Assembly (NCBI GenBank): GCA_964199315.1
Contig: OZ116700.1
Location: 4,030,001-4,094,000, forward strand
Origin: Orbicella franksi
Lineage: Eukaryota
DNA length: 64,000 bases
Reading direction: 5' to 3'
The position numbers and the translations under genes are program-made. Shown here one piece after another: positions 34,831 through 62,400 of the stretch (within the stretch, counting starts at the first letter, position 1; each line of letters begins with the position of its first letter). The notes below the pieces were generated by a model. The model saw only the letters and a program-made list of their open reading frames with translations. It was not told the origin of the DNA and searched no databases.

Positions 34831-36565
34831 TCTCTACATGAAACGGTGTTTATTATAAGATATTGTCATGACAATTCACTGCTAATGCATGAATTTTAAA
34901 AACTCAATGCCTGTGTACATTTATTGGGGTGAAAAAAAAAAAGCGTAAGAACATTAAGTCTTTGAGTGGTGTACAAAATTAATAACTAACTATAATTTAG
35001 CTTGTTCCAGGCATTATTCTGATTAGTGCAGGTCTGGTGTTGGTCAACTTCATACTGTCATGGACTGTGTAATCAGGCCATAGTGACACATTTTGTTCCT
35101 TGTACTATAAAGACACCACAATCCTGCTGGGAAATTCTAGCCACAGGTAATCCCACTAGGATATTTAAAAACTCAAGAGCCTGTTTATTCAAAGTAGGAT
35201 TTAAAAGTGTCAAGTGCAAAAGTAATTCAGTTTTCCAACAATCATTTCTTTGTTCTTGTTGTTCAATGTCAAACTTCTCAACTTAAATTTGGCAGTGAAA
35301 TGCAGTTTGAAAATAAGAGAATTACGACTCTTGGTTAACTTTATGATCCTTTATTAGCATTAATCAGCTTTTGAAGCACTTGGCCCTACTGGTCAAAATC
35401 CTGGGAGACTTTGGTGATATGTCAGTTTTGCGCACCAGAAAAGGGAGAGCTGGGGTGTGTGTAGAGTATGGAGGACACTATCCATCTGCTAATGGAACAT
35501 TCTGATCCACATTATTTTACTAGAAGACTTGACGTTTGTTATAGTTTCTACTCTTTATTATAATATTATTTCTAACTTACAAATGGTGAAGTCTATTATG
35601 TACATTTTTCTGGGCCAAAGTTGTGATGCAAAAGCACATTATTTTTAAATAAATTATTATGAATAACTGTACAACTAATAAATAATACAAAACAGTCTTT
35701 TTCTAACTCTTCACTGTACACGGATCTCACAATAATCCTTATCAAAGCACAGAGTTGTTAAACATAACCAGGTACTGGCAAAATTAGTACCATTTACTTG
35801 TGATAGTCATTCTGCTGGCTTATTTGTTTTGTTAGAAATAGGTTGGCAAAATCAGTCCCATACTTATTACTAACTTCAGGTTTTTGTGACAACCCAGGCA
35901 ACACTTTTAAAGTATTGAAAAAATGCAGATGCCTGTGGTTTGAACACCTAAGTACAACATTGCAAACTTTGTAAATATATGTGAACTTAGATCAAAAAGG
36001 TTTATATGTCACAGTACATGTTCATTATGTCATTCCAGAAAATATCCATACCCCTCGCACAGGAGGTTTTTTGGACTAGGTTCTTAATGTCCTTAAAAAA
36101 GTTTGGCCTTTTACAACACCACCCTGGGATTTTCCAGTAGTTCTTTTGGATATTTTCTGGAGCCACACATTTCAATTTTGTGATTTCTTTTCCAAAGTGG
36201 TCATCAAATTGAAGGAAACCATATTTTAATTAAATAATACTTTACTCTACAGTAGGAAAAAATGGCAAAAAGCTCAAATATGAATTTACCAAAAAAGGAG
36301 GAAAGACGGCCTAGAAAGACTAAAGGAATTATGAACAAATTGTTTTGTCAACTTTTAAAAATGTTTCTGGTGATTTATTCAGGATGGACAATTCATGACA
36401 CCGGTTCTTTTATATAACTGTTATGGCTGTGTTCTAAATCCTGACTCTACTAATTTGATAAAACACCTGATAAATAATTATTGTCTAGAAATTACGACAT
36501 TTAGAACCTAAGCTAATGTGGTTTTAGTACTTATAGTAAACATTATGCAACATGCACAACTATCA

Positions 36566-39500
36566 TTAAAGAGAATCATCTTGCAACATTTTGATATTTT
36601 CTGAATGTTTGGTAATTCCAATGACACCACAGGCCAAGCAAGATCCACTATTTCCAGTTGTGAGGCTCAGTTCATGTCCTCCTGTCCCAAGATCATCTAC
36701 TCCTGCACAAACCTGTGAAGCAAACATCCTTACTGAAGCTTACTTTTTACTACAAACAAACAAGTTTTCCAGACAACTGTCTTTAACAATTTTGATTGTG
36801 TGAATGAACAGCAAACTACCCTAAACAACTTCTCTTCACAAGGTTTCATTTGCTTATGAAAAACTTAATAAGACAATTTTTTGACAAATACTCCTTAAAG
36901 CCACAATACTCTTGTGTGCAGTGGAATTATTTAAATTTTAAATCCAAGTTCTTTATTCTTTCATCAATAACTTTTTTGGGTCATGCAAATGAGCATGTTT
37001 TACCATTTGACAAGTTCTATCTTGAGAACAATCTCCTTGCAGTAGGATATAGTTGTCAAGGAACAACCTGCCAAATCTTCTTAATGAGCCTCCTAATGTA
37101 TATGTGAAGACCTACTTGTCTATAACTTCATAAAGACTGAGATTAATTTCTTTCAACTAAGGCTGGTTTGGTCCAGTTTGATTTTAATAATAAGCAATCC
37201 CAAGGCCCTGTTGGGGTGAAATTCTGAAATGCCAGGACACTGAAACAATGTGGGGTCTGATAAAGTGGCAGCCAGTATGACAAATGAATGTAACAAACTT
37301 ATGAAATTGCAACATGGAAAGGTTTGAAATTCAGACAAGGATTGGATATGCTTAACCCCGCTTACAGGACCGCAGCCATGCATCACTCTGTACAACCGGA
37401 CATTACAAACGTCATCTGTGTAAAAATCACTTCAGTCTATTACAGTACTGTACAATTACTTGTAACCCACTAGTCAATGAATGATGAACAAGAGCATTCT
37501 GGAGGGCGGCATAAGGTTTTATGGTGATGCTTTTTGGTGTGGTTTTGCAGAATTTTTTTTTAACTTGCAGTATTGCAGTTTTAAAAGACTAAGCGGTTTG
37601 CAGTTTCATAATGTATTGCCGATTTAGTTCAATTGCGACCAACTGCAAAAAAATGGGTGTTTCTAAGCTTGTGTTTGGGATATTTGAGCCTGAAAACTAG
37701 CATCTTGATAAATTTTCACAAGTATGAAGTATGAAGTATTGATGACAGCATTTAGCACACTTGTAACTATGGTTTTGGTGTTTTGGTAAATTTTGATGCA
37801 GTATTGCAGATTTTTTTGGACATTTTTCTACCCACTTTTGCAGTTTTTGGACCCCCCTTACACAACCCTCATTCTAATATTTGGTTCCCAGATCATGAGC
37901 AGTCAACTTTGCAATACAGACTGCTTAACAATAAATTTCACAAGGAAAATACTGACCTCTAATGTGCGACCTATTACTGAGTGTTCCCCTGTTAGTGAAA
38001 CAATGTTATCAGTAATGTTCACTTCTGCCTGGCCTTGACTGTCAGCTTCAATGTTCCCAAGGTCTCCTGCATGTCTATTATAAAAAAACAAAATGAATTT
38101 AAATAAATAACTTACTTACCCATGACAGTTAGTGTAAAATGAATTATAAATAGATTCGAACCCCTATTAAGCAGCCACCTATTAAATGGCCACCCCTATC
38201 ACGCGGCCAGCCCCTTTGCGGCCACTATCCATTTCCCCAAGGGTGGCCGTTTAATAGGGGTTGAAATGTACAGTCAAACTTCTGGTTGCGACCACCTCTC
38301 ATAAGCAGCCACCTCTCCCCAGTAACCAGTTTTCCAAAATACCAAAAGTTTCCAAGTCAAATAACTACATTTTGAGCCTCTTGTAGGCAACCACCTCTCG
38401 TAAGCGACCACGGCCACTTTTAGAGCTAAAAGTTTGAAATTCTCCTTTGTTTTTATAATAACCTCCCATAAGCGACCACTTGACAGATAATAGAGCGGAA
38501 ATTGGACAATAAGGTGTGGTTGTAACCTTATCGCATTCCTGGGTAGTACAAGAGATGGAAATTTCTCAATAGGAAATACTGGATTTTTTCTCAAAATTCA
38601 CTTTTCACCAGAAAAAAAGCATTAAAAACATGGGGTAAGTCTCTGCAGTTACCATGTATGGGACAAAATTTTGAGGCAACATGGTCTAAGCTCTCGTAAG
38701 TGACCACCTCACGTGAGCGACCATCTAGGCTTGACATTTTGGGTGGTCACTTGCGGGAGGTTTGACTGTAACTGCACAAAAATTGTTTTTATTCAACATA
38801 AATTATGAAAAAAATAATGAAATAATTGTAAAAAAATTTTAATATAAATTGATAATTAATGTAAAATGTAAATAATAAGTTTCCTGATTGAATTAGAATT
38901 TGGAGTGTTGAGTTTTGAGGAAATTGTAAAACCAGAAACCCTCCGAGCAAGGATGAGAGCCAAAACAGCTCAACCTACAAATGACTGACTAGGTCCAGGA
39001 TTTGAATCTGGGCCACATTTTGAGGAGCTATGCCATGGTTTTGTATCTTGAAAAGTTTAGCCAAAATTTTTCAAGTTTTTCCATTGTAATTCATGTCAAT
39101 CTTCTCCACCCTTAACCATCCTTGTTCCCTTATGGTTTAATATTATCTTGTTGGTGATTTTCTATCAACAGTAAAGTAATATTTTCAGGTTTCCTTCAGT
39201 CTAAAGATAATATTTTACATGCCCAAAATAACTGAAAATGCTATGACTGAACTTCCCTTAAGAGTGCCGAGGGCTCTATTACCATAGTACCATTCCTGCA
39301 TTCTTTCCACTAATAACTGAATGTATACTTATAAGTTAATTTAAGGCTGCTGTCACCAAGTAAATTGTATATACATGTCCTACTTTTTTCCTTACCTGTC
39401 TTCATCTTCTGGTCCTCCATGGCTTTTGTTCAGTGGATTAAAGTGAGCCCCAGCACTATTACAACCTAGTAGGTAAAAAAAAAAAATAATAATAATAATT

Positions 39501-41469
39501 TTATGCTGCCCCACGAACAACATACTACTACTACCAACAACTTACAACACCAGCGACAACAACAACAAAGTACCCTGAGAAACTAGGATTATCGAAAATG
39601 TGCAACAAAAATACCATGAAAGATCACAGAGAAACATATTAACAACCTTGTGATATATCCCCAAATTCTAGAATATGAATGCCATGATGCCCTTCTGTCA
39701 GTCCTTGTAACACTCCTGTGATTACACACGGCGCACCAGGATACTAGAAATAAAATTTACTTATCAGTCATTCCTAGCCATATTTAAAAGGATCTAAACA
39801 AAGGATTCTTCAATAGACCATCCCAGTTTCTAGTGCCATCTTTGTTGGGAGGGACAAACACAATTAATGTAAGGGAACTGTTAGATGTTCGATATCCTAA
39901 CAATTCAAGGATGATTAACATTCCCACATTTTTATGACTTAAAAGTTAAAGATACCCAGGAAAAGATTTTAAAAATTAACTTTGAAGGACAAAGCTGTGT
40001 CTAAGAAGCTGAGGAATCACATTTTCAAAATTTCATTGCAAAGGAAGACTTCATTTTACAGACAAATGCAGGGTGCAAAGAAAAAGGGTAAGGGGTCCGA
40101 CATTTGAGTGTACAATTTAACAAAACTTTGTAGAGTGTCCCCCAGGACAAAGGTCCAGGGTATGAAAACTTCAAAAACACGGAAACCGTAACACTGTGGC
40201 TTAATTTTCTTGGGATGCTCGTTCAGTAAATTCCTTTATCTCAAGCACATCATTTGGTATTCAAATTTTCTGTGATTCCTCTGACATACAATTCTCCACT
40301 ATTCAAGTTTGCTATGTTCCCCCCGCCACCCAAGCAAGAAACCATCAAAGGGCCTTAAGGCTGCTGTACACTAGCTGATTTTTGGTCATAGACCTGCGGT
40401 TTCTTTGTCGGAGTCAAATCGGGTTAAAATTCGTCGGGCCATCAGTGTGCCGCACACTAGCCAATTTTTTGTTGCGACTAACCACGTTGACGCTTGGGAC
40501 CGAGTCATCCAAAATCAAGATGGTGCCTATTCCACTCACATGACTCTTATGACATTTCCTAATTGGTTGAGGCGCACACTAGCGGACAAGGCCCGACAAG
40601 ATGTTTTGAGATCTAGCACTGTCAGATATCGCCCGACAAGCCCCGAACTTGTCGCAGACTTGTCTGAATAGACCACACACTAGCCAACAAATGAAGATTT
40701 TTTGTTGGCCAACAAAAAATCAGCTAGTGTGCGGGGGCCTTTAATTGCAGCGTCAGCAAGAGTCAGGACTTCACTAGGGCAACCTGTTTTATTGCCAAGT
40801 CACAGAGAATGTGATAGCACAGTCACTTAAATTATTAATTTCAAGAGGTTTTGTTTTAATTTTTTCTCTCTATACAAAAGTTTTCTCCAAAAAAATAAAA
40901 CCTAAGGATATTTTAGTTAAAATATCCAATTTCGTTCTGTATGCTCAAGTGTTTATTGTTCAGTGGGATTTTATGGTGGCACATTTTCCACGCACTTGCA
41001 TTGACAACTGACCGTTCAAATGTAAACAGAGTTTGATTGTAAATATGAGTTTGACTATTTTAAGCATGTGGAACATAACCGACGGAGACCAATCTCTACC
41101 TTAGTTAGGTGACAATTACTGTAATAAAGGATACTGAAATGCCACCATTCACCAAATTAATTAAGCTCATGACAGCTGGATCGATCTCACGCGCATGATA
41201 AGATAACGTTGTTTAAGCTAATTATGTGGATCAGTACTAACTTCAATTTAACTTCCTTGTGGAAATATTCAAATAGTCGATTTCAGAACAGAGACGACCT
41301 CTTCAACAGCTTTCTTCCGAAACAGGAATAATTGACAACCTGTGTGTACTTGTGTATACTACACGAAGCAGTTCTTTTTAACCTACTTGAAACGAACGCT
41401 TACCTCTTGTAAGAACGTAATCGATCCTTGAACATCACTGCCAGCTAAGTAACAGACTGCTCGAGCCAT
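36566..41469 (-). CDS. SOD1-like protein (165 aa) with intact Zn site but altered Cu site (H48L, H120C, R143C; human SOD1 numbering); probable pseudo-enzyme
   Basis: Exons 41404-41469, 39647-39743, 39396-39465, 37957-38074, 36566-36712; GT-AG, phases 0/1/2/0 as in SOD1. Protein: [165 protein letters not shown]. Confidence 0.9.
38271..38768. mobile_element. Tc1/mariner-type MITE (same family as 26243), abutting a ~115-bp MITE at ~38155-38268
   Basis: TA|cagtcaaact ... gaggtttgactg|TA. The neighbouring element has the TIR gaacccctattaa/ttaataggggttg. Confidence 0.8.
40358..40740. mobile_element. PIF/Harbinger-type MITE
   Basis: TTA|aggctgctgtacactagctgattttt ... aaaaaatcagctagtgtgcgggggcct|TTA. 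Confidence 0.8.
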
Positions 41470-43412
41470 ACTTGACAAGCATCAGAGGTATTTGTAAAAT
41501 ATATATTATCAGTTCAGCTTCAGTCAAGACCGCAAAAACAACAACTTCCAACTTTGACGTCTCGAACGCGCGCGAAAGACAAACACACCGCTGACACAAA
41601 GAACTGCCCCTCCCCCGAAGGTATAGCTACTCCATTCCACGTACATTCGAGCCATTACTGTTAGCCTCCTTGGCAGAAATTAATCTTTCTCTTAGGACTC
41701 TGGGAAAAAGTGTGTGGTCCGTGAGCCAAGAGTCTCGGCGAAGGTCATCAACATTATCGGCGGGGGTGGGTGGGAAAGACAGGGGGGTGGGACTCCGGGA
41801 GAATACGGGGCGAGAGAGGAAAGGGCGGGAAGCAGGAGTTCTAAGAGGGCGGGAACCTTGAGAGAAATGCAAAATACTAATTTCTGTCATTTAATAAACG
41901 CTTAAATACTTTCAGAAACAGGAACCCCAATTTTTTCTTTACTTCCACTTTAATAGCATATTTTGAGACTTCTGGGCAAAAATTCGCCCTTAAAAACTGA
42001 GGCTTACTTCCAGTAAAATTGAAACCACAAGGTCGGGAGTCGGGAATGCAGGTGCAGGAGTTCTGACCCCCTGTTTCCCTCCCCCCCACCCCCGCCAAAC
42101 AACAACATTGCTTGGAGGGGTGGTTAGTACCAAATCAAAACGTGAGGGGCATGTGGAAATGGGTTTTAGAAGGTATGATGTATGCAGTCGCTTGGAAGGG
42201 GAGAAGGGGTTTTGTCTGGCTTCAACAGCAGATTTAATGCAGTCAGTTGTGCTCATTTTCCCAGATACCACATGACTAAATGTTTGGAACAACTGTATGG
42301 AAATTTCCTGGGAAGTCTGGAGATTTGTTGAAAACATTCAACTGAAAATTCTGGAAATTCCAGTAGAAAAATCAAATAGAATCAAAATTTCTGGTGAGAA
42401 ATTTCCAAAAATTTGGGTAAACAAGATTAGTTAGTCCTCCTTTCTGGAAATTCCAGAAAATGCTGTTCCATTCATCCCTGGAAAGTTAAGAAAATTCTGA
42501 CCAGAATTTTTCATCATCATTATTAGCCTGTCCCATGCCAGGCATTTGGTTAGTCGAGGGGCAGTGCAAATACAATGGAAGAAAAAAAGGCAGGTATTGA
42601 GAGAAATGAGTCGTACTCCTCACTTATTTTTTCTCTTCCTTTTTTTTTTTCTTTTCTTTTCCCATTTTAGCACTGTGTCTGCCCCCAACTAACCAACCAC
42701 CTGGAACAAGTTAATAATTATTGGTCTTACGGTTACAGACTGAGGTACTATAATAAGCAGACCGTATATAAGAAAGAGCATGGATTGTGTGTCAAAGCAG
42801 TTTCTTTAAACACAGGCAGAAAAGCCACTTGTGTAAGCTTCAGGCCATTATTTAAAAACAGGCCAACTTTGCTTCAAAGGACAGAGGATATCACTTTACA
42901 TGATCTTTCAGTGTTCATATCAGCCCTTAGTATCCATTACTCAAACCATAGTTTGTAAGTCACATCAGCTTTAAAATTAACCTAGCATAAAACTGTTGAA
43001 TGATGGAAATTTATGAGAACCTTGTAAGAGATATTTTTACCAGGAAAAAACAACCCCTCAGGAACCATGGAGAGGGAAGGGCTGGTGGAGCTATTAATAA
43101 CTTGGGTTGACAGTTTAGTGGTCTAGATGACAAGGATAATGTATGAATTTTGCAACAAGAAAGCAACAAAATGGCAAAAAAGTGACCCCTAAGAATGCTT
43201 GTTTGTCCTGGCCAGATTTTTTAGCCCTACCAATTTTTGGTCTCTTCAATCCCTACCCTAGTCTGTGAACACAGATGTATTTCCAGCTGTCACTTGTCTC
43301 TCCCAAAAAAAACAGCATTATTTTTAGTGGAAACAAGCAACAGCCAGAAATTAAATACCTCTGCGTTCGCAGGCTATCCATGCCCCTAAATAGAAATAAT
43401 TTGCAACTGGCA

Positions 43413-46216
43413 CCCGTTTTAAGAAGCTCAATGTGGCGTAGAAATTTTTGTAGAGCTCTACGACTCTACGCTTTCGTCACCAGTCTCCTCCTACATGTTG
43501 GAAAGATACATTACCTCTCCTACTTCATAGCTTTTACCGTAGTTCTGTATTGTTACTATGGTTACCTGCCTATTTTGTAACATTTGATTTCAATTTGCAG
43601 CATATTCCTCACATATATCTCATATATATTAAAATGCTATTAAAGTGTCATTACGGTTTACAGTGTTTTAATCGTTTCCAATTTAAAATTTTGTATTGAG
43701 TTTACCCTCTACCATCTATGCTCTACGCTCTACAGTTCTATGTACGAGCATAGAGGCTAGAGGCTTACAGTTATTGTAGCAAATATTAAGGTGCATGGGG
43801 AACGTTTAGTGTTATTACAGTTTACGGTGTTTTAATAATCTTTCTAATGTACAATTCTGAACTGAGTTTACGCTCCACGCTGTATGCCCGGAGGGGGGGG
43901 AGGGGATACTCCCTTACACGGGCTATATAGGTATGTGCGGCCCCAAAAGGTATGGTTTTTCAGCCGTTTTGGTCATAAACAGGGTATAGATTTTTAGGTG
44001 ATTTTGGTCATAAATAGGGTATGGTCTTTGCACTCTAGCCTTCATATGGGTAAGTTTTTTAAGAAGAAGCCACTTTTTCATCATTATCGAAAAGAAAAAC
44101 AACAAAAGCCCTTCACAAATTATGTTTATGGTAAATTAACATTGGTCTGATCTAGGGAACCAATCATAACGCAGGTCTGAAACAGAGTTTTGATTTAAGG
44201 GTCAGGTCATAAATAGGGTTTCGAATTTTTGGTCAGGTCATAAATAGGGTAGGGAATATCGCAGATTTTGGTCATAAATAGGGTAAGGGTTTTGGGAAGC
44301 GGGCCGCACACCCCCAATCAATTTTTCTGGAAGTACCCCCCCTCCCTCGCCACTGGGGCTGTATGTTCTACCATCTACATTCTACTCTCTACATTCTACC
44401 AGCTACTCTCTTCAATCTACGCTCTACGCTCTACCATCTACCCTCCAAGTCCATCTACGCTCTACGTTCTACCAGCTACTTTCTTCGATCTATGCTCTAC
44501 GATCTACCCTCTAAGCCCATCTGCTTGGAAGGCTATTGGAATTTGTAATTTTTTAAATTTTTTTACTTTTTTAACGAGCACTAGTGAACAGCACAAAGGA
44601 AGACTTCTTGTAGTTGTAAGCTTTTTTGTTTATTTTTTTTTTCGTTTATTTCCAACGCACTTCGTCTCTATCTGAGACTTCTTCAGGGAATGATTTCAGT
44701 GGGCCTAAGTTTAACTTCCCATGGAAGTGAATAACTGCTGAAACATGCTGTAAACAGACGTTACAAGAAATGCCTTTATGCACATTATTGTCATATTTTT
44801 GGGGCCATACGATTAGCGCTAATCGTATTGCGTGTTGCCATATTTTGGGGGCCATATGATTAGCGCTAACCATATGACCCCCAAAATATAAAAGAAGTTA
44901 AAAATAAAAAAACATTTAAAAAAATGTTACAACATTAACACATTAAAAAAAGACATTTTTTGTTTGGAAGGGTTTCCACAGAAATCCTATTAGAGTTTCT
45001 TAGTTATCTCTATAACAAGACTGATTGTATTAAACTTACGTACTATGTTACTAACGAAAGTAGTATTTCATTTCTTGATTATTTCTTTACAAAGATGCTA
45101 ATTTTAGCACTCAGCAGCTTTCTACCTATCAAAATCCACTAAATAAGTATCTGTACATTCCCTTTGAGTCGTTTCATCCCCAGAGCAACAAGAGGGCCTT
45201 GATTAGAGGTGAGCTTATGTGCTATACTAGAAATAGCTCCACGTTTAAAGCCTTTAGTGAAATGCGAGAAATTCTGGAAGTGCCTCCGGCTTCGCGGTTA
45301 CCCAGTTGGGGTTTTACTTCCTTTATTCAGGGAGGTTAAATACATTAACAGAACTTAGGGTCGTAATTCGTCGTAGAGATTGCTGTTCATTTCAAGTTCG
45401 AAATAATGGTTTAACTCAGAACCACTAACATCAAGCTGGTTATCCAGAGACATTTACCAGACTTAGACTGTATTGCTAGTTTTTAGGGTTGTAATTCGTT
45501 ATAGAGATTACTGTTCATTTCAAGTCCGAATAAATGGTTTAACTCAGAACCACTAACACCAAGCTGGTTATCCAGAGACATTTACCAGACTTAGACTGTG
45601 TTGTTGGTTATAAATCTTCTACTACTTTAGCATATTTATGTAAATAGTATGTTTTTGGGGGGCCATACAATTAGTGCTAATCATATGGTCCCCCAAATAT
45701 AACAACATGCAACAAGGCATTTCTGTTAATGTCTGTTTACAGCATGTTTCAGAGAAACTCATACTCGCAACCAAATACTTTTTACCCCTCTACTGGTTTT
45801 TTAAGCCTCTAAGCTAGTGTAGAGAGTAGTCAAAAATTCTTGAACTAATAAACTCATAGATACGTAGAGCATAGAGGCTGAGCGTACATGTAGATGGTGG
45901 AAGATGGAGTGTAAGAGCTTTAAGAGTGTAGCACGTTGACTGTAGATGGACGAACATATAGCATAGAGCATAAAGCATAGTCAGGGTACACTAAATACAG
46001 AATTGTAAATTGAAAACAATTATTAAAACAGTGCAATCCATAATAACACTCAACATTCCCTAAGCGATATAATATTTGCTACAATAACTATACACCACTA
46101 CACCTCTACGGTGTATGCATATGTGAGAGAAATGGAGCTTAAACATTCAAAATACTACCGTAGAGTCGAAGAGCTCTACGAAAATTTCTACGCCTAATTG
46201 AGCTTCATAAAACAGG
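43413..46216. mobile_element. ~2.8-kb foldback structure with long nested inverted arms
   Basis: Inverted matches: 43413-43470 with 46159-46216, ~43600-43870 with ~45850-46110, and ~44735-44890 with ~45650-45752. The arms are rich in CTCTACG/CTCTACC repeats; a MITE (~43890-44300) is inserted in the left arm. Confidence 0.75.
44950..45345 (+). pseudogene. Frameshifted Penelope-like reverse transcriptase C-terminal fragment
   Basis: DIF..IKLTY..ESSISFLD / STYQNPLNKYLYIPFESFHPQSNKRALIRGELMCYTRNSSTFKAFSEMRE / KFWKCLRLRGYP: PLE RT motif E plus the following helical region, with at least two frameshifts. Confidence 0.75.
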
Positions 46217-46447
46217 CTGGGTATAATAATTTGCTGCACTGAGAGGCTTATTCACCATTTCATCAGTCTTTAATCATGATTCTTCCAGAAGCTCAAGGAC
46301 AAGTGAAAACATTACAAAATGAACTTTTAATGACTACATCATGTCTCTTTCTGGTTATTTCAGACTTTAAGTCTAGTTATTACACACTTTCATGCTTTAG
46401 TCCCTCCAGTCATCTGATGCACTGCAAGAATCGGCCAAAGATGCTCT

Positions 46448-49400
46448 TTACTTAGTAATACCAATTACTCCACAGGCCTGGCGAGGACCTGCATTTCCAG
46501 TCTTCAGGCTTTCATCATCACCACCTTTTCCCAAGTCATCTTGCTTGGCATGAACCTGAAAATTGAGCCACAAGTTGATAATGATTAAAAAGGCTTTGAA
46601 AACAGCCTGCTTCTGACACATAACAATCCAAAATTAATATAGTCCTCAGTAGTAGATTTAGGGGAGGTTCTGCTACAGTTGTTCTTTCACTTTCTGGAAA
46701 AAAAAAATGTCAGTAGTGAACCACGAGTATAAAATTTCCCCTCCCACTACTTTTCAAGCAAGATATACCACAGCTCTAGTACAATCAACTTGTATCTTTT
46801 GACGGCCTCTTGTGTACAGGCTTTACTTTGATTGCACAAGTGATAATAATTTGCAGACAAAGTGTGCCACCTATGAAACAGCAGGGTATCTACAAGGTGA
46901 TTAAGTCAAGTCTAATAGATTGAACAATCTTGCTTAAGTGCCTCAATCAATAACACACATTCAAAGGGCAAATCTCAGTATTCAAATAACACACTGTCTC
47001 TGGACTTCTCTTCAACTATTAATTTTTTTGCTAGTAATAAATTCATTTAAGTCAACAAGCCAGCATGAGGCCTTCAAAATCTCAGGGTTTTCAATAAGAA
47101 TCAGAGTAGATGGCAAAACTTCAGTAGTGGACAGTGAAGGTACAACTCGAGCAGAAGGCATGACCTTGGGGTGGGGTGTACAGGAGCATGCATGGAGATT
47201 CTTAAAATTTGGACTTCTTAAAATGCCTTCTGCATTCTGGAGCAAATATATGCATTATTATAACAAGTATTAATCTGGCCGGGTTAATTCTTGTTGATCT
47301 GGTGGCTGTGGAATGGCCCTGAGGCAGTTTGTTTCAAGTTCTTGACGAAATCAGTGGAACAGGTAGCAGCTGTAAAAATTGATGCAGCCTTACTCCCAGA
47401 TGCAACAGCAATTTTAGGAGTGTCTGTTGTTGACGCTTCTCCTAACCATCTGAATCAATTAAAATAAAAGATTAGTTTCTTTATACCTTGGGTGCACGGC
47501 AGTTTATGGCTCCATTTGTGGCCACAGAAACTCAGGACATACTTGTCTCTTTACGCTGTCGCTTTTGTGGAGGTTAAAACCCTCCAACAGAGTTGTTTGC
47601 CTCTTTGCGGCAGACATCCGATGTGTAATCAATTCAAATTTTGACAAAACTCAAACTCCGCAAGGTGGACATGATCATGTCATGCATGACACATGTGGGT
47701 AGTTGTATTGGGCATGCATTGTGCAGGTTTCATCCCGAGGTTATGCATAAAGGCCAGGCTGCTCATCGCAACTGTTTTTGAACGAAAGAAGAAACAAACG
47801 TGAGTCACCGCTGCTAATTACTCGGAATTCAGGCAACTTCCTTTTGTGTTTTATGAATAAATGTTGGCCAATCCAAGCATTGTGTTTTGTAGAAAAATGT
47901 TTCATGCCATTCGTCTCATTTGACACAAGTTCCCAATCAAAGTAGGTGGCGAAATCATGTGAAGTAGCCAGCAAATTTCACTGGCCACCAGCCCTTATTG
48001 AAAACCCTGAATCTCCCAAGGTGAATAAAAGAAAACATGTTAAAGGTAGTGAGGAGAATTGATCACATACCACAATTGTGCGTCCAAGAACAGTGTTTGG
48101 TCCTTTAAGAGTAACAAGTTTGTCCGTTATGTCTACTTTTGCTTTACCATCAGCCCCTGCTGTGATGTTGCCAAGGTCCCCATAATGACTGTATGTTAAG
48201 ATACAAAAAAGTGATAACATTACAATATTAATTACTATCAAACAGTTGGGAATTCAGGGAACATTTCTAAAACAATTGACCAAACCATAAAACATGGCAT
48301 ATTCTTTTAAAGCAAAGGTACCTGTTAAAATGCTTTACACTCGTCAATATGAAGCCACAATAACTTAGCAATACTGTTACCAAAAATGGAAGTAACTTTT
48401 TGAAATTCTTTAGGATATTGCAGAGGAGAACATTCAATTTGATATCACCTAAACTCAATTTCAGTATATTTTTCTCAGATGGCCTCCTGCAAGAAAGCGT
48501 GCTGATACATAGGCAAATTTGTAAATAGGAAATCTTTACTAATTACACGCATGCAAAGACATACCGTGTGGGACGAAATTTTTGTGGGATCCAATTTTTG
48601 CAAATTTCGCAGATTAAATCCCCTGAAAACAAACTCTGGCGAACAGAAATTCAGCAGAAATTTACTCCTTTTATTTACATTGCTGAATTTCAATGGAAGT
48701 GGTTGCAAACAGTGTCACGAAAGCGACCACATGGCTTCTGTTTTTGTTACTTTCAAGTACCACACATGAAATCCGTGAAAAATTATTCCCAGAAGTAAAG
48801 TCTGAAATCCAAATAATTGGCAAAAATTTGTTCCTGTAAAACTCAAAAATCTGAAGTCTGCGAAATTAAACTCCCGCAAAAATTTCATGCTACACGGTAG
48901 ACATTTTTTATAATAGGTATAAGTTTTACTTGCTGTCTTATCCTTTTAGAAAATGCTTATTTTTAATTTAATTAAAAGCTATTAAAGATCTTAGAGCTTT
49001 AGTTTAGGTATTAAGTTAGCATTTTTGAATATGTTTATAATACTAGTGCTATACCAATTTATTTTACAATAACTGGAGACATTGTTACCGTATTGCATCA
49101 TCTGGACCTCCATGAGTTTTACCTTCGGGATTAAAATGGGGGCCAGAACTTGTACAACCTGAAAATGAAAACAAACAGATAGTCCACTATATGTGTAGCA
49201 TAATGTGGTAACCCTAAACATATCATTTACTCCTCTTTCACTATTGAACCATCAAACTGTCCTCGTAGCTGTCATCCTACTCACACCCGCTTTCAGTGTT
49301 ACCTGCATAGGTGTCATCTTTGCACTAACTTTTGACATGCAATCTTTCAACATGCCATCTTTCGACATGCTATTTAAATAGCTGACAGATTGTTAAACTG

Positions 49401-50659
49401 TGAAAGTGGAATTTTTCCAGTTATGATAATTACTGTCCCCAAATGGCTGAGGAAGATTGTAGACTTTGCATGTTTCCAGCTGTATGGGATAATTCCAACG
49501 ATTTGTGTGTAGTCCATCAGCTCTCAATAGTGACTTGTGGTCGAATTGGGTTGTTACCGCTTTTAGTATTCGAAAGATGTAAACATTCAAAACAGTCATC
49601 TCTAATAGTGTGACTTCTTGATTTTGGTTGTCATGTGACTATCCGTACATATGTACATCCGTCCATCTGTCCGTACCCCAAACCCCCTTCCTTGAAATAT
49701 AGGAGAGTAGCACCACTACCGTAGGTACATCTTTGATATTGGACATCCATGTTATGATTAATTGACAGCTGTCAAAGCAAGGTATTTGCTGACCAGTATC
49801 ACGTGACCTTATCGCAGGCTCAGATCAAGAGCTCACCAAGGTCGCGTGTAAGCAGTTGAAATGCCCCGATCTACATCTCAAATGACTACATCGTGAGACT
49901 AACGATAATACGCTTAATTATTGCATCTACCACAATGAACAACAACAACCTTTTCCTCGATACAAGTTTATGTTCCACCATTTTGGTTTTGTTTCTTGAA
50001 CATTTTCATCCCAGTCGACCACGCTGAAATTTCCCATATGAACAGACCCCAAAATTTGTCCCAGTAACTGAGCCAGCACAGTTACCGGGCTCATATGAAG
50101 AGGCCCTCAGAACCCTACCATTTGTGCCATCTCCAAACTGGTGAACGTGGAATCCATGCAGTCCAGGTGTAAGACCCTCCACTTCACCAGTAATCTTGCA
50201 CACATCTCCATCCTGTAAGAAAATTTGGGGTTACTCACTGTTTTTCAGACTCGGGCCTGTTGATCAAGGGATAATGTTTCTCTGTTGTAAAATATCAACG
50301 TCATGGAAACAGTGTGGACCGATGAGGGTGTTGCCCAATGTCGATGATGCCCCAGTTGCACGGAAGCAAAAGTAACACATGAGAAGTCTCACTGACTTCA
50401 GGAAACGATTTAAATGATTTATCTTTACTTGAAAAAAACATTTAAAGCTTCATTTCCCATGCTGTGAGTTATTTTACAACTTTTTTAACAGCTTAAAATA
50501 TTTAGCAAAGATCTGATCGTAAGAGCGAATGAATTCACTATTCACACACATGTATTCACTCGTCCTCAGGCAATACTAACAACTTACCTGCTCAAAGTGG
50601 ATCACACCTTTCACAGGGCTATTGTTGGGTAATAAAACGCAAACTGCCTTCAGTGCCAT
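46448..50659 (-). CDS. SOD1: Cu/Zn superoxide dismutase, cytosolic (153 aa)
   Basis: Exons 50588-50659, 50119-50212, 49089-49158, 48071-48188, 46448-46555. Protein: [153 protein letters not shown]. All Cu and Zn ligands, R143 and C57/C146 are present. Confidence 0.97.
48564..48897. mobile_element. MITE with TA target duplication, in SOD1 intron 3
   Basis: TA|ccgtgtgggacgaaattttt ... aaaaatttcatgctacacgg|TA. Confidence 0.75.
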
Positions 50660-53434
50660 AGCTAGTTCTGAATTTCTTTACGACTTCGAACAGCTTGAAT
50701 CCTTTTCTCTACAGCAATATGCCAAATCAGCACGTGATCTTCTTGTCAAGCTCACAGAGGAACCTGGGAAAACGCTTGAAGGAAAGCGTCAAGTCATCGC
50801 GCTTTGTTCCAAGGTTGTTACACAATAAACAGGAGTATTTTCTTATTTCACTCTGTCGCTTCTTTCAGCTCTCTTCCAGGCGTTCAGTTAGTTTGAGAGA
50901 AGCGCGAAAACACAGCGGAGCGAAAAAGGGAGAGAGTCTTTCTTGGTGCGAGGAGCGATCGAAGACGGGAGGTTATCAGCATACCAGCGGAATGTGGCAT
51001 TCTCTGCGTTACAAATACGTCAATAAACGGCCATATATTGAGCTTGGGTCGCCTGCGGTTTTGATCTTCTGCGCTGCACAATTTCTAGCCTGAAAGGGCC
51101 GAGAAGAAACTGGCTGAGAATGAAGTGGTCTCCCCTCCCATCTCTTCTGACCTCTTTCTTCCCGCTTTCTCTTCGCCCCACCCTCGACTAGAGAGCCTGT
51201 TCACAGGATACATTCATGGTCATGGGCTCGCCATGGCTTTTGTCAGCACCAGAGCATCCTTAAACTTGGTTGCTTATGAAGTTGTCTGTGGTTGACCCAA
51301 ACAACTAAAATATATAAATAAATAAATAACTTAATTTAAGTATCGAATGTACAAAGTACTGTAGTACTTATTGGGGACACTGTAAATAACTAAGTATTGA
51401 AAATAGGACACAGACTGCCCAGTTGGCTGTTCTTACACAACGCGGGTCGAGGAATTTAACTCAGGACTACCGAGAACAAATCCAGATAGCGGTAGGGTGG
51501 AGCCGACCAAGGTGTGTTCGACCAAGGCGAAGTACAGAGGAAACTCGGTTATTTTGGTCTTTTCTAGCTAAAAACATTTTAGGGCAGCCCGCACGTGACA
51601 TCTGGGCCCTTTTTTTGGCACGAAACGGCGGGTGCTTGATAAATAAATCAACCGTTACGGCCTTGGAGAAAGCCGCTGGTTAAAACAGTAATTCGGTATA
51701 AGCCCACTCAAAGTGTCGCCAGACAAGACCGACTTGGTGACAACGGAAAAGCCCTGAAGACCAGATTCAGTACAATTAACAACTCACAACGTTTTCAACT
51801 GCATCATAATTTATTAAACTAAGGTTACGAACATCTGACTGCAATTTTCCTCTTAATTTATTAGTATCTTTTTTTTTTCGTTTTTGTTTTTTCTGCGAGG
51901 ATGTCCAATGTTGACATCCCACTGTTTACGAATACTTTGACCCCACCGTCCCTTTCTCGCGACTGTGATGCGATTGTCGACTCGCGAAAGAACGAGACAA
52001 ACGAAAGAAGTGCTCTTTAAAGATCACACATGAAGCATGCAGGAAGACCAAATTACCAAGTGAAAAGGGCTGGTAAACCAGTGGTAAGCTTATCAGCAGA
52101 AAAATATAGATCAAACACTTCGACTGGAAGTTCAAAGCTACATTGCTAAGAAACATGGCTGACGTCGTCTGTTCGAGTGCAAACCATTTACAATGCATGT
52201 ATTCAAGTTCGTACAATTCGTCAGGGGTTCGTCACGCTATTTATGATCATTCTTGCCCATCTTCATTCCACAAATGTGATTGATGAAATCAAGGTTACAT
52301 AAGACGACTTCGCGTACAAATTGACCCCAACAAGTAATTGGCTTATCCAGGGGGGCGTCGGACAAGCCCCTCCGTCTCCCCCTCCCCGCTACCTTACATA
52401 TACGACCCAAACTGCCGAAAGTTGGTCTTACGTTTTAACCAGTTGCAAAGACCTCATTTCTCTTTAGACCAGCAAGCAGAAAATTAAATAGCGTAACCAA
52501 ACCCATATATACGGAAATAGGAATAGCACCAAAACAAACAGAACGTAATTCTGTAATTTTAACTCGCTTTAAAAAAAAATCCTTTTTACTCGGAGTGAAG
52601 TGTCTAAACACAAGATTGAGTAGGATAAGTTGAAGCGCAGACGCAAGTCGGTTTGTTATCGTTAGCGTTGACTGTTGGCTTTGGTAGCGTGACCGTAGTT
52701 CTCGCTGGTGTTATTTGACAAAATAATACTAACTTGCTGACTTCGTTTAACACAACAAACCGAGTAATTTGAACATGACGTTGGATCTTCGAAACCGAGT
52801 TAAGAACTGAAGATGGTACCATGCACGGAAAACAAAGGAAAAGTGTTTCCTTTTTCAAGGATTCTTAAAGTTGTTCTATCTACAATTTCAAGTGAATTGC
52901 GGGTAAGTCGCGCAAAGCTATGGTATGCACAACCAGCCTGGCATAAGATGAACAGAAACTTGGTATCAGACCCAGTCCTGAACAGTTTTGTTTGAGAGGA
53001 GATCTGGGTGAAATGAAAGAACTCCACAAGTAGCACTTGTCTGTGTTTAAATCTCGCATGCCACGAGAACGGACAGCACTCGAAAGGGTTCTTGGGAACG
53101 GTATGAAAAAGCCTGGTAAAGAAAGTGTTGCTAAGAACGGTTGCAGTTCAACCAGAAGAGATTTTAAGTATTTCGTGAGGAACATGCTTCGGAATTCGAA
53201 AGTAACACCGTGACATCAGAATCTGACTATAGGATGTAACAACACTTTTTTTTGTCCTAAAATTAGGATATGAACACCTGTATTACTTTTAACGAAATAT
53301 AAACTAACATATTCAAGCCCAGACAAATGCTGCGACTTTGCTACCCAACTGGCAAACCCAATAACTTAGTAAGATTATAAATTAAGAGCAACAACAGGGT
53401 AGCGACAAACAAAGCGTTCTCTAAGTCGGGGGTC

Positions 53435-56400
53435 TTACAGCAAGCCTTTGGGACCCTTACACACGGGAATGTAGCAAGGAGCGCTGGGATCCAGACCACT
53501 GCCGGACAGCTCGATATGATTTGGGGAGATGAGATGATTGGAAGCAAAGCGCGGAACTCCAGGGGAATCCCCGGTAGTGTAGGTAGTGGTAGCGGGCATG
53601 ACAGCCATCACCTCGGCGATCTTCAGCTTCAAGGTTTCGATCTCTCGATCTTTTGTCTTGAGGTTCGCCTGCGCTATCTCCAACTGCCTGCGCGTGTCGC
53701 CTAAAGCCGAGAACAGGTCCAACTTCAAGCGCGTCTCGGAACTCAAACTGTTCTCTAGATGAGTGTTCTTGCCCTGCATGGTTGTCAGTGCAGACATAAG
53801 CACCTCCGTCTCTTTCTTTAACTGCATGCTATCATATTCCCTGGTCTTTTGTCGCAGCGTTTCAGCCTCCTTGTCGACTCGCTTGATTTCCTCTTCTTTC
53901 TCTTGCAGCAAAGCACGCAGCTGACGACTGTCTTCCTCCAGTTCGTTCCTGAGTGCGTTACACGCCTCATGACCTGTCGTTTCTTCGCGCTGTTTCGCGG
54001 CCGCGTCCTCGGCTTTCTGTCGTCTGCGCTCCTCTCGTAGCTGACTCTCCGCCAAAAGCCGAGCATCTCGCTCAGTTTTTAGTTTACGTTCCAGAGAAGA
54101 GATGTTATTACGATCTTGCTGCCGTGCTGAGGACATGGTTTGAAGTCTGCGGAGAAAAACACGGATGATTTAAGTTTCAATTCAACACGACGCTAATATT
54201 TTACAGTCGAACCTCCCGTAAGCTACCACCCAAAATGTCAAGCCTATGTGGTCGCTTACGGGAGGTGGTCGCTTACCAGAGCTTAGAACTGCATATTAGG
54301 TCAAAATGTTGCCTCATTAACATATGGTAATTTTTAAGACATTTAGGTCGTCTCTTTTAAGACTGATAAAGTACAGTGTATGTGCGTTTTATCTTTAAAT
54401 TTTCAATGTTTTATTCATGTGAAAAATCAATTTCGAGAAAAAATCCGGTACTACCCAGGAATGCAATAATGTTACAACACCTTATTATCCAATTTTCGCA
54501 CTATTATCTGTCAAGTATTATTTGTCGCTTACGGGAGGTTAAAAACAAAAGAAAATTTCAAACTTTCAGCTCTAAAAGGGGTCGCGGTCGCTTACGAGAG
54601 GTGGTCGCTTACAAGAGGTTCCAAATATAGTGATTTGACAGGGAAACTTTTGGTATTTTGGAAAACTGGTCGCTGACGAGAGGTGGTCGCAACCGGAGGT
54701 TGCACTGTAGTTAGATAACAAAACGCACCAGGATCTTTGTATTTACAAGAGAGGGTAAGAAAAGCTGGGAGAACGGTTTGACTGTAAGTACCAATAACAT
54801 TACACTCGGACATATCTTATTTGTTGGTGTGAATCAAGGGCCAGCGGTTAATTAGTTGTACAACTATTAAGTGTAANNNNNNNNNNNNNNNNNNNNNNNN
54901 NNNNNNNNNNNNNNNNNNNNNNNNNNNNNNNNNNNNNNNNNNNNNNNNNNNNNNNNNNNNNNNNNNNNNNNNNNNNNNNNNNNNNNNNNNNNNNNNNNNN
55001 NNNNNNNNNNNNNNNNNNNNNNNNNNNNNNNNNNNNNNNNNNNNNNNNNNNNNNNNNTGTATAACCTCGCACTCGGACTTCAGCTGCTGCAGTTCAACCT
55101 TAGTAGATCGTTCGCTGGCCATCAAACTGTGCATGGTGGATCTCAGCTCCTGTTCGCCTTGTCGACTGGTCTGCAGCTCCACTCTCAGTCGTTTACTATC
55201 ATTCTCTAGTTGGGTTACATTGCTCTCAGCCCGACGACTGAAACAGAAAAAGAAACACTTGCAATGACACACTAAAAACAAACATACCTGCCAGAGAAAG
55301 TTTACATAAATAGATAGATAAGAAGCAAGGTTGAAGTAATTTAGTCACCTTTTCGACACATTTACGTTGGTTGGTGAAAAAACCCACCGCAAAACCGAGT
55401 TTATACCTCGGGAGGCAGCAAAGTCTAGGTGACTACACGTCTCTTTGTTAAACTACTAGGACTACATGTACCCGTGTTTGGAGACGACTAAGAGCGACGG
55501 AAATTGTGCATTATCAGTGGGAAAAAAACATAAAGATCTCAGAAAAAAAAACTACCGTCATCAGCATTACATGACTCTTCTTTCTGCACACCACGCAATC
55601 TTTTCGTGGGAGACGACGTTGTCGTGACGAATCCGAAAAGTGCATGCTGCGATCAGCGTAACGGTAATGTGACAACTGAACAGCAATACGTTACTGATAA
55701 ATTTAGAAACCCTAGGGCACCCTCTGTAAAAAGAACAATCACGCAAGTGAAGCATAATGCAACTCCCCACCCCCATCCCCTCTAACCCCCCCAAAACAGA
55801 CGAATCAAGTGAATGTAAGTAACCACGTTTACAAGAAACATAAAATTCTGGAGACATAAAAAACTACTGGTAATTGCAACATGCTTACCGTAGCAGCCTC
55901 TCCTCCTTCAGTTGAGCGGAGAGACTAGGTCCAAGGTCAACAGACTGAGATTTCTCATGTCCCTGTAGAGAGGAAAAAAGACCAAGTGAAATAGTCTGAG
56001 AAACACTGAAGAAAAAAAGAACAAAATGAATTCAATCGACAACAATACGGCACGTACCTTGGGTGAGTTGCTCCTACTATTCTTTCGACTGTTGTTAATG
56101 GAGCTACTGGACGCACTCAAAGAATCGCTGTCAGACTCGTCATTGTCGTCATCATCATTATGATCATCGTAGTCTTTCAACTTTTCACTTGCTTTTGTGG
56201 CATTTTTCTTGGAAGACTTTCCAAACACACCGCTGAATGTAGTACGGTTCTGTTGTCCCCCTCTACTGTTCTTTTGACTTGCTTCCAGAGACAGTTTATC
56301 AAGTTCATTTAAGTTATGGTCCTCACTTGTCTTTTTTGATGCGAGATTTGAAAGTACATCTAGATCTTTCAGTGCATTCCCTTTCAAAGCGGGCCTTGAT

Positions 56401-59400: not shown

Positions 59401-62400
59401 ATGCTCAGGCTAAATATGCAACAACAGCATTCAATTCCAAGAGGAACGACGAAGAATTAGCTGTCATCGACCACGTTCCATAGACGACGCAGAACTTGGT
59501 CATTTCACGTTGCTGCTTTGCAGAGGACAGCAAAGAAATGTACAAAGATTTATAACGCATGTGCACAGCTATTGTTTTGTTCATTAAACCTTTTGTTTAG
59601 TGACTTTATCGTTGCCGCCGTTGTCGTGGTTTGCTTAAGCTCCCTAATTATAGAGCTAGCATAGAAGAAACTGGCAAAGGAAATTGTTTTAACAAATTGC
59701 TGTTTCATCAAATTGTTCAAATGAAAAGTTCAGGCCTGTTTTGCATGTGCTGGCCTCAAAATTTTGGAGTTGGACCACTCATAGCCAGAAGGCTTTAAAA
59801 TGATCTCTGTGAAGGGACCAATTCACTTTCACCATACCTTCTCCACCCAAGTGTTGACAGGCTAAAAATTTGTTTTTCTTGTTTCCTTATTGGCTGGCTT
59901 CAGACAGGGCAGGAGACAGGGCAGGAAAAAAATCCAGGTCCAGTTGCCCGTGGAAAGAAAATTTTGCTCTTAGGGAAGTGAAAATGGAATTTTCCTGGTC
60001 CAATGGGCAAGTGAAATTAGCCTCAGTAGTCTTTCTGGAGAAAATTTTCGATCAAAAACAATAAGGTGAGTTAAACAAAGAGTTAAAAGCATGGATCAAT
60101 AATACTTATTTAAAATCCCAACATGCTTTGCTCACTTTTGCCCTCCAATCGCCCTTCTGGCTGGATTAGTTGATAAGGCATGAACATTGCACACATAGTG
60201 GGGACAACTGAAAACTGAAATGTACTGGCCCACTGGGCAACTGAATTTCAATTTTTTTTTCCTGCCCTGTTCAGGTATAATGACTAAAACAGCCTTGAAA
60301 CTAGTACAGACAAAACAACTCTGAAAATTTTAGCAACAAAATAATTTTGAACACAGCTTAGGACATTCCAGGAAAAAACCCATGACCACCATGACAAAAA
60401 TAACATTGAACCCAGAAAATCAACTGAACAATCTAGCAATGTCCCTTTAGCATTACAATAAAGGTGAAAACAGTTTTGAACAGACAAAACAGGAATCATT
60501 GGAGTGTTTTTCATTTGAGTGTGGTATATAACCAAAACCAACGTAATCACTCTATCCAATCACAAAGCACACAGACAATACAGTGAACATATCAAAACTT
60601 GAAGTAATTACATGTAGCTGATGTGAAGCACAGCAAAATGTGAGCATGCAAGTGATGATTGGTTTTGGTTTTAGTTCGGATTGGATGAAAAGCTGGTGCA
60701 AGTTTCTTGAAGCCCATTGTGTAGCATAGTAATGCAAAATCATTACTTTTCAACACTAAAATGAAAACTCTAAACCAACATTTTTTGATTACTACCCCTA
60801 ACTATGTTCTCTGTCTTACGAGAACATGTATAACACGACATACTTGAAATTACCATAACATTAATAAGAAGTTGAATGATGAACAAATTGATGCTAGTTT
60901 TTATGTGTCTGTCCTCTTATTGATGATAAATTGCATCATAACATTGTCAAAGTGGCTGTGGAACCACGAGCCGTAGGCGAGTGGTTCCACAATGAACTTT
61001 TCACAATGTTATGACGAAATTTATCATGAATAAGAGGACAGACGCATAAAAAAACTGACGTCAATTTGTTTTTTACAATAACAAGACCCCAAAATGGTCC
61101 AATGCCGGGAATAAATGAGGGGCAAAGACGCCATAAAATTGCTGTAAACAAAGATAAGTGTATTTCATTCAAAATGACACAAGCTTTGTCAATAGCTTTC
61201 CTCGCTTTTTGATTGGCTACTTAAAATAGTCCATAAAATCTCATTGGTTAAAAAGTTGACAGTTTGACAGCTGAAAGTTGAACTTGAAAGCTTGCATAAA
61301 TTAAACTTTTATCTGCCTGTACTCTTATTGATGATAAATGAGCCAATCAGCGTGCGAGAAATTAGACAGTTATTGTAAAATGTACTTTTGCAAAACGATC
61401 ACCATAAACAAGCGGTGTTAGCTGGCATTGGGGCATAAATATCAGTTTGATCCAGAAATACACCAAGAAAATCCTTGGAACTGACTTTCCTATTATGTTA
61501 GTAAGCAGTTCATAATCTTTTGGTTGAAGATTGCGATGATGAAAATCAATGTGATTCATGAACAAGGTTTGAACAAAGAAACTCCCTGACAATCACAACA
61601 AAATACATTTAATAGGGCAAGAGATCTTTACATCTAAATCGATAGCTTTCTTGGTCCACTAGCCTGCATTTCCAAAGCAGATATATACATGAACTTGTCA
61701 ATGCACCTGTACTATCCACTGGACTATTAAGCTTTAATATTCTCTAGCCTAATGGCTCTTTTTAGACCAGCCATGACTGTCATAAGTGGCTGACAAAAAA
61801 ATGGCTTGCTAAGAATATAACTCAACCTTTATACGTGTTGAATATAAACCCAAGACTACAAGGAATTGATTCAGTCATTGAAACCCCATTTACAAGTACA
61901 TGCACTAAAAGAAAAATTGGCATGGCACTGCAAATTTCAGCACTGTGCCGCAGTAAGGCACCATCCATTTAAAAAACCCACAAGAGGTTTGCTCCTGTGT
62001 GGCGCAGTAACAATTTTTGCCTTGCACCATACATTTCCATCTATTTCCCTCGGTAAAGGTAATTCCAAATGTATTGTTTTGCCACAATTGTTCACNNNNN
62101 NNNNNNNNNNNNNNNNNNNNNNNNNNNNNNNNNNNNNNNNNNNNNNNNNNNNNNNNNNNNNNNNNNNNNNNNNNNNNNNNNNNNNNNNNNNNNNNNNNNN
62201 NNNNNNNNNNNNNNNNNNNNNNNNNNNNNTGAAGTGGCTCTTCATCCACTGCACTGGAATTTAGAAGTGTTGATTTTTGTGGAGGGAGGAAAACCGGAGA
62301 ACCTGGAGAAAAACCCTCGGAGCAAGGACGAGAACCAACAACAAACTCAACCCACATATGATGCCGGGTCCAGGAATCGAACTCAGGCCACATTGGTGGG

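Follow-up and report, generated by a model that had tools for sequence, protein, structure and literature searches.

A stony-coral SOD1 paralog with a rewritten copper site, encoded next to canonical SOD1 in Orbicella franksi

SOD1 derivatives and the coral paralog

The described derivatives of the copper/zinc superoxide dismutase (SOD) SOD1 fall into three kinds only, namely the copper chaperone for SOD1 (CCS), the copper-only SODs (Cu-only SODs) and CSRP, and in the review that lists them corals are mentioned only for CSRP (Peterson and Culotta 2026; PMC13017621). CCS docks on SOD1 through the dimer interface of its SOD1-like domain II, which in human CCS carries a single ligand change, H120 to Asp, and neither binds copper nor dismutates superoxide; the insect CCS, which has no domain I, is a pure molecular chaperone with no copper delivery (PMC13017621). 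Another example is found in leporipoxviruses, whose inert SOD homologs sequester CCS by protein-protein competition (PMC7605207). Here we describe a SOD1 paralog in a 64,000-nucleotide stretch of the stony coral Orbicella franksi (assembly GCA_964199315.1, contig OZ116700.1, positions 4,030,001 to 4,094,000; this whole stretch is referred to as the window), where it occupies positions 36566 to 41469 of the minus strand, approximately 5 kb downstream of canonical SOD1 and on the same strand. It is an intact, spliced and expressed SOD1-family gene, present across Scleractinia and under strong purifying selection, in which the changes are concentrated at the copper site.

As the review names three kinds only, a fourth, stand-alone kind of SOD1 derivative would extend its picture. 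The gene also offers a natural experiment for metallobiochemistry, in which the scaffold and the zinc site are kept, the copper site reads Leu/Cys/Cys and the constraint is above that of SOD1 itself.

The gene model was rebuilt from the window on the minus strand, and the complete five-exon open reading frame (ORF) with clean splice sites claimed in the original prediction was borne out: all introns run from GT to AG, and a coding sequence (CDS) of 498 nucleotides (nt) encodes a product of 165 residues. The parts of the gene are given below in transcript order, including its untranslated regions (UTRs).

To at least 41504, minus strand: 5'UTR; RNA contigs L009 and L006, both from close relatives, align over 41500/41504-41404 and then jump to exon 2
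41404..41469, minus strand: exon 1, 66 nt, 22 codons, ATG at 41469-41467, from the gene model and RNA contigs
39647..39743, minus strand: exon 2, 97 nt, carrying H46, Leu48 (CTA, 39671-39669) and F45I
39396..39465, minus strand: exon 3, 70 nt, carrying C57, H63 and H71
37957..38074, minus strand: exon 4, 118 nt, carrying H80, D83 and E118
36566..36712, minus strand: coding part of exon 5, 147 nt including the stop (36568-36566), carrying Cys120 (TGT, 36709-36707), D124, Ser140 (36649-36647), Cys143 (TGC, 36640-36638), C146 and the tail
35472..36565, minus strand: probable 3'UTR, about 1.1 kb, to which L009 aligns onward from exon 5

Over exon 5 and the 3'UTR segment, L009 and the window are 77% identical overall. 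The exon translations match the Pfam family Sod_Cu (PF00080), exons 2, 4 and 5 each doing so alone, orthologs likewise have PF00080 as their precomputed annotation, and the residue register was taken from a HMMER alignment to solved human SOD1 chains. In this register the strand 4 motif H-x-H reads H-I-L in the paralog (H48L), the strand 7 motif V-V-H reads E-V-C (V118E and H120C), and G-S-R-L-A-C reads G-S-C-L-A-C (R143C), giving rise to C-L-A-C; the three substitutions had been predicted correctly, down to their codon coordinates. The same alignment bears out the retention in the window copy of the zinc ligands H63, H71, H80 and D83, of H46 and of C57 and C146, to which the bridging D124 can be added. 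The protein begins directly at SOD1 strand 1, has no signal peptide, and carries 13 residues beyond K153, a tail that contains no cysteine in the window copy and a single one only in Porites.

When compared with SOD1 (PF00080), the paralog is about 57-61% identical to animal SOD1s (57% to the adjacent SOD1) and shares with them the five exons, the beta-barrel, the zinc site, H46, H63, D124, loop VII, C146 and residues of the dimer interface. It differs from them in the Leu/Cys/Cys set at positions 48, 120 and 143, in V118E, A140S and F45I, in a C-terminal tail that is variable, and in forming a clade of its own on a long stem. CCS domain II, too, resembles SOD1 and combines a zinc site that is intact with a copper site that is disabled, and a SOD1-shaped protein that has kept its zinc site and lost its full copper site could be taken for a true CCS ortholog, that is, for the corals' own copper chaperone for SOD1. 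We consider this very improbable. The paralog is a single 165-residue domain from which both the MxCxxC motif of an Atx1-like domain I and the CxC motif of domain III are absent, as the original prediction had held in denying that it is a true CCS; searches of the PDB by sequence and by fold give SOD1 chains as the best matches; and separate CCS genes are present in Acropora according to a KEGG-based annotation (PMC3750612). Unlike CCS, to which it is not orthologous, the paralog has lost two copper ligands and gained thiols.

The leporipoxvirus proteins are like the paralog in being stand-alone, single-domain SOD1 homologs that are inert, as the paralog would be judging from its residues, but they are viral and directed against the host, whereas the paralog belongs to the host itself, is conserved throughout an animal order and carries Leu/Cys/Cys. 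In Bacillus subtilis, the lipoprotein YojM has a SOD fold without two of the copper ligands and reportedly shows no dismutase activity; it differs from the paralog in its replacement residues and is not known to be under comparable constraint. Cu-only SODs and CSRP are likewise derivatives of the SOD fold in which one metal site has been remodelled, but those proteins have lost the zinc site and loop VII, have kept copper and are secreted (PMC13017621), whereas the paralog keeps its zinc site and loop VII, loses copper ligands and has no signal peptide. A place for the paralog among the Cu-only SODs or CSRP was ruled out on these three features.

An AlphaFold2 model was obtained from P0361, which is the closest full-length ortholog (94% identical). 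The predicted local distance difference test (pLDDT) is 86 and the predicted template modelling score (pTM) 0.83, with lower confidence in the disulfide loop and loop VII and with a disordered tail, and Foldseek aligns human SOD1 structures to the model at template modelling (TM) scores of 0.94-0.95 and a root-mean-square deviation of 1.4 Å. In the model, residue 120 is the last of strand 7 and residue 143 the first of strand 8. In SOD1 both of these residues face the copper, and since they close the loop VII hairpin, the two new thiols, C120 and C143, are predicted to lie side by side in the old copper pocket, adjoining H46 and H63.

Conservation, expression and age of the paralog

The search for relatives began from exon 5 by exhaustive HMMER, which gave a handful of short fragments with the same Cys120, Cys143 and tail, and continued with a profile of scaffold SOD and window exon translations. 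With a second-round profile made from full-length orthologs, family members scored 296-344 bits as opposed to 220 bits or less for single-domain canonical SOD1s, and a few double-SOD chains and fused models scored between the two. Full-length orthologs were found in Orbicella faveolata, in Pocillopora damicornis, P. meandrina and P. verrucosa, in Stylophora pistillata, and, on the Porites side, in Porites harrisoni, P. evermanni, P. lobata and P. lutea, as well as in several RNA assemblies. Only stony-coral names occur in the family, in which both major stony-coral clades are represented, and the profile search placed no anemone, octocoral or other animal protein in it. No Acropora paralog was seen among named proteins, which may reflect either loss or missing annotation. 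Over exons 1-4, the window paralog and O. faveolata XP_020601197.1 are identical at 117 of 118 residues.

Among all family sequences gathered, Leu48 (52 of 52) and Cys120 (57 of 57) are invariant, and H46, H63, H71, H80, D83 and D124 are so in all paralogs. Position 143 is Cys in 54 of the 57 tabulated sequences and Tyr in the other three, with Ser in one further fragment (P0006). The check on conservation that had been proposed for the three substituted sites was thus passed without exception by L48 and C120, while C143, and with it the CxxC motif, proved common and not universal. The codons of L48 and C143 vary synonymously among orthologs. C146 is Cys in all paralog sequences except one. 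Position 57 holds Cys in robust-clade corals, as against Gly in Porites and in two further lineages of the complex clade, so that the C57/C146 pair, earlier listed as kept, is kept in the window and in robust-clade corals and has lost C57 in lineages on the Porites side. Elsewhere in the pocket, A140 is replaced by Ser, F45 usually by Ile and V118 usually by Glu, with Val or Ala in place of E118 in two lineages. The dimer-interface residues G51, D52, I113, G114, R115, 116, I149, G150, I151 and K153 are invariant.

Two codon-level observations accompany these counts. The C57G change is TGT to GGT (Porites exon 3, L003:12883-12952; also L010 and L012) while C146 stays; in lineages with this change, C143-x-x-C146 would be the sole nearby thiol pair, and the L010 lineage additionally has Tyr143 and Val118. 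Ser140, at a position where Ala is invariant in 22 canonical SOD1s, is encoded by AGT in robust corals and by TCA or TCT in complex corals; an exchange between the two serine codon families takes two steps, a hint of either an independent gain of Ser or strong selection for it.

The original prediction had also placed the focus of change in the copper pocket, and this was confirmed against a reference of 22 canonical SOD1s, ranging from fungi to vertebrates, at sites that are at least 90% conserved. Eight family-specific changes at conserved sites were found (K3R, F45I, H48L, T54S, V118E, H120C, A140S and R143C), and six of the eight lie in the active-site shell, which was defined before the enrichment test and to which 15 of the 70 conserved positions belong (Fisher p = 0.0008).

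Purifying selection was estimated as the ratio of nonsynonymous to synonymous substitution rates (dN/dS, or omega) by pairwise Nei-Gojobori estimates over a 153-residue core, in seven coding sequences taken from the window, the Porites genome and five RNA contigs, none of them from Pocillopora. Each of the 21 pairs gives a ratio within 0.08-0.20, at dS values that reach about 1.3. In all three species pairs for which both genes were available, the paralog is lower than SOD1 in both dN and omega, the latter being 0.108 vs 0.221, 0.101 vs 0.142 and 0.106 vs 0.169. This does not extend to the C-terminal tail, whose omega ranges from about 0.4 to more than 1 when distant taxa are compared and whose length varies from 12 to about 26 residues; the 13-residue extension reported earlier is therefore present in the window copy and is not a conserved feature.

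Evidence for splicing and expression comes from RNA. Residues 33-165 of the window protein recur unchanged in P0357, from a Joint Genome Institute (JGI) metatranscriptome, and residues 34-165 in the Logan protein P0353; both span junctions 2/3, 3/4 and 4/5. L009 and L006 align exactly at the five exon borders of the window, and Porites RNA contigs likewise fit the exon borders of the Porites gene, so that the check for spliced transcripts suggested with the prediction came out positive. Two further contigs of 1.2 kb, L001 and L002, hold exon 5 only or exons 4 and 5.

A decaying duplicate, or an artefact of assembly or annotation, might be suspected from the sole Orbicella RefSeq model, which is truncated and runs from exon 4 into intron 4 (P0348). 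This is hardly credible, as the ORF is intact with all its splice sites, at least eight taxa show identical substitutions in genomes and transcriptomes that are independent of one another, dN/dS is about 0.1, and spliced RNA contigs cross the exon 4/5 junction and encode protein identical to that of the window. Decay and artefact were accordingly rejected on dN/dS, residue conservation and spliced transcripts. The prediction that selection, and not decay, shaped the gene holds on the same grounds, together with the orthologs across Scleractinia, the invariant L48 and C120 and the pocket enrichment.

In a maximum-likelihood tree, eight paralogs form one clade (support 100/100) with a long stem (0.45) and short terminal branches. 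Within this clade, the Porites side is set against Orbicella, Stylophora and Pocillopora, which matches the divide between complex and robust corals, at a basal fork supported only at 80/48. Since this fork, weakly supported as it is, fits the complex/robust divide, the paralog would on that reading predate the deepest split of living stony corals. An approximately unbiased (AU) test rejects a grouping of the paralog with coral SOD1 (p = 0.004) and does not reject one with anemone and octocoral SOD1 (p = 0.15), for groups that were named after the tree was seen and with a paralog stem that is long. At the base of animals the SOD tree collapses into a polytomy, and it does not place the origin of the paralog. 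The idea of a young copy of the adjacent SOD1 was rejected on the AU test (p = 0.004), to be read with the same post hoc groups and long stem.

Possible roles of the rebuilt pocket

With confidence that is about evenly balanced, we read the paralog, from its residues, as a zinc-loaded SOD1-shaped partner or sensor that is not a dismutase and has a thiol site where copper sat. The protein would fold and load zinc like SOD1, and would pair through the kept SOD1-type interface with itself, with the co-located SOD1 or with CCS. The thiols at 120 and 143, beside H46 and H63, would then form a Cu(I)-binding or disulfide-switch site, by means of which the paralog may regulate or sense SOD1 maturation, copper status or redox state in place of acting as a catalyst. 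The nearest functional parallels for such a protein would be CCS domain II, the insect CCS in its chaperone role and the poxviral decoys that sequester CCS. The stand-alone chaperone, heterodimeric regulator and redox sensor put forward in the original prediction are likewise candidate roles.

Given the loss of H48, H120 and R143, it follows from established knowledge of these residues that the protein should not be a normal dismutase. That it is still a superoxide dismutase, using an unusual His/His/Cys set of copper ligands, is unlikely. The kept H46, H63, zinc site, loop VII, T137 and D124, in a fold that is intact as modelled, would be in keeping with such an enzyme, but of the four copper ligands (H46, H48, H63 and H120) two have been replaced, as has R143, which guides the substrate at the active-site channel, and these replacements extend to all orthologs or nearly so; in human CCS domain II the change of H120 to Asp alone abolishes both copper binding and activity (PMC13017621). 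The electrostatic loop of the paralog also lacks K136 and E133, as is the case in many active SODs.

The linkage to SOD1 and a possible co-transcription with it fit a functional tie between the two genes. In three RNA contigs, from at least two species, a single molecule combines the paralog CDS with that of SOD1 or with the 3' end of the latter, all introns having been removed (L007:23-1352, L008:1-1285 and L012:1-1474, corresponding to window positions 50659-36566); these reflect either read-through or dicistronic transcription, or else assembly across overlapping UTRs. In L007, an AATAAA stands 121 nt past the SOD1 stop.

Several points weigh against the partner or sensor reading. At the interface, V7 has changed to Phe, Tyr or His, residue 9 to Ala and residue 53 to Ile, together with T54S, and such changes could favour homodimers over pairing with SOD1. 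Position 143 departs from Cys in one lineage (Tyr) and in one fragment (Ser), and two lineages have Val or Ala where the others have E118; a fixed C120/C143 pair can therefore not account for everything. As C57 is Gly on the Porites side, the classical disulfide is dispensable there. The joint RNA contigs may have arisen in assembly, where UTRs overlap, and need not represent read-through. That residues 120 and 143 would lie close together is deduced from the strand limits of the model and from SOD1 anatomy.

Another possibility, to which we lend limited credence, is that of an independent metalloprotein that partners with neither SOD1 nor CCS and whose rebuilt pocket would bind a metal for its own purpose. 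This could be Cu(I) buffering or delivery, a second structural zinc, or thiolate-copper electron transfer within the Greek-key barrel, the last with a His2Cys set whose axial residue is hydrophobic, as it is in blue copper sites of high potential. H46, H63, D124 and C120 are all invariant, which suggests that the pocket is still used, and the enrichment of changes in the pocket points the same way, as does Ser140 with its AGT vs TCA/TCT codons, which fits selection for Ser at the channel rim. In yeast SOD1, His-to-Cys mutants of the copper site reportedly bind copper as copper-cysteinate centres. However, C143 and E118 vary among lineages, and an independent role alone leaves the kept dimer interface and the tight linkage to SOD1 unexplained.

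A bolder reading, which we regard as speculative, is that the paralog may represent a new SOD1-derived class of stony corals, in which a zinc-stabilised scaffold with a thiolate site (H46, H63 and C120 with C143 or E118, and Leu48) would serve as a Cu(I) or redox switch or as a small electron-transfer centre, controlling SOD1 maturation or oxidative-stress signalling from a gene coupled to SOD1 both physically and in its transcription. If true, CCS, Cu-only SODs and CSRP would be joined by a fourth branch, linked to reef-builder physiology.

The neighbouring SOD1 and the annotation of the locus

The features upstream of the paralog in the window are as follows.

41470..46447, minus strand: spacer between the SOD1 stop and the paralog ATG, about 5 kb, with short stray ORFs only
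46448..50659, minus strand: canonical SOD1, with exons 50659-50588, 50212-50119, 49158-49089, 48188-48071 and 46555-46448
53412..54148, minus strand: 3' exon or exons of macoilin, upstream of SOD1 (tblastx 89% over 199 residues)

The canonical SOD1 is complete, with exons of 72/94/70/118/108 nt, all copper and zinc ligands, R143 and C57/C146, and its first 79 residues are identical to O. faveolata XP_020601134.1. In both genes exons 3 and 4 are 70 and 118 nt, as the original prediction had noted. These sizes are the ancestral animal SOD1 structure, and human SOD1 has the same ones; the agreement therefore stands as an observation and gives no information on the age of the duplication. In Porites harrisoni the spacer is 935 nt long, and RNA contigs from other corals put it at 0.37-0.9 kb; because it holds short stray ORFs only, the window spacer was probably expanded by repeats. 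The gene order in P. harrisoni is macoilin, SOD1, paralog and a further gene, with collinear matches in the window.

The canonical SOD1 of corals has some oddities of its own, namely Q49, a Tyr/His at position 81 (R-H-Y-G-D) and a vertebrate-like electrostatic loop. Its rate of evolution exceeds that of the paralog (window 46448-50659; P0363, P0366, P0406, P0418 and P0420), and its nearest non-coral matches are brachiopod and vertebrate SOD1s, not those of anemones or octocorals. Runs of N, which are assembly gaps or masks, lie at window positions 54877-55057 and 62096-62229.

In databases, the orthologs of the paralog go under the labels "superoxide dismutase [Cu-Zn]-like" (RefSeq), "hypothetical" or "uncharacterized", and NCBIfam and the ESM Atlas gave nothing beyond "Cu/Zn SOD" for it. 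Literature searches, including searches by accession, found no description of the coral paralog, and those for natural SOD-like proteins without copper ligands and for H120C or H46C mutants returned nothing specific. Many deposited coral models fuse SOD1 and the paralog into one "superoxide dismutase" of 300-394 residues, among them the GenBank models P0270, P0364, P0365, P0367, P0389, P0392, P0407 and P0409. Oxidative stress is central to models of coral bleaching, where SOD1 is a standard marker. Because of the shared name and the fused models, coral expression and proteome studies may mix the enzyme SOD1 with a paralog that is presumably non-catalytic.

Other deposited models are shortened. 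O. faveolata XP_020601197.1 (P0348) and the Stylophora pistillata isoform X3 (P0380) run from exon 4 into intron 4 and stop there (exon 4 ends at window 37957, with intron 4 at about 37956-37900 on the minus strand), omitting exon 5 and with it C120, C143 and C146. This read-on in two genera may be a conserved intron-retention isoform or a shared habit of annotation.

Outside the family, an 87-residue SOD fragment, P0050, reads G-A-C-S-A-C, with Cys at 143 and H120 kept; judging from this fragment, R143C may also have arisen outside the coral paralogs. Among the top matches of the exon-5 search were P0001 (1169 residues, seven SOD stretches) and P0004 (3670 residues, 29 stretches), which are probably repeat proteins of the CSRP type; the 29 repeats of P0004 are far above 12, the largest number known according to the 2026 review (PMC13017621).

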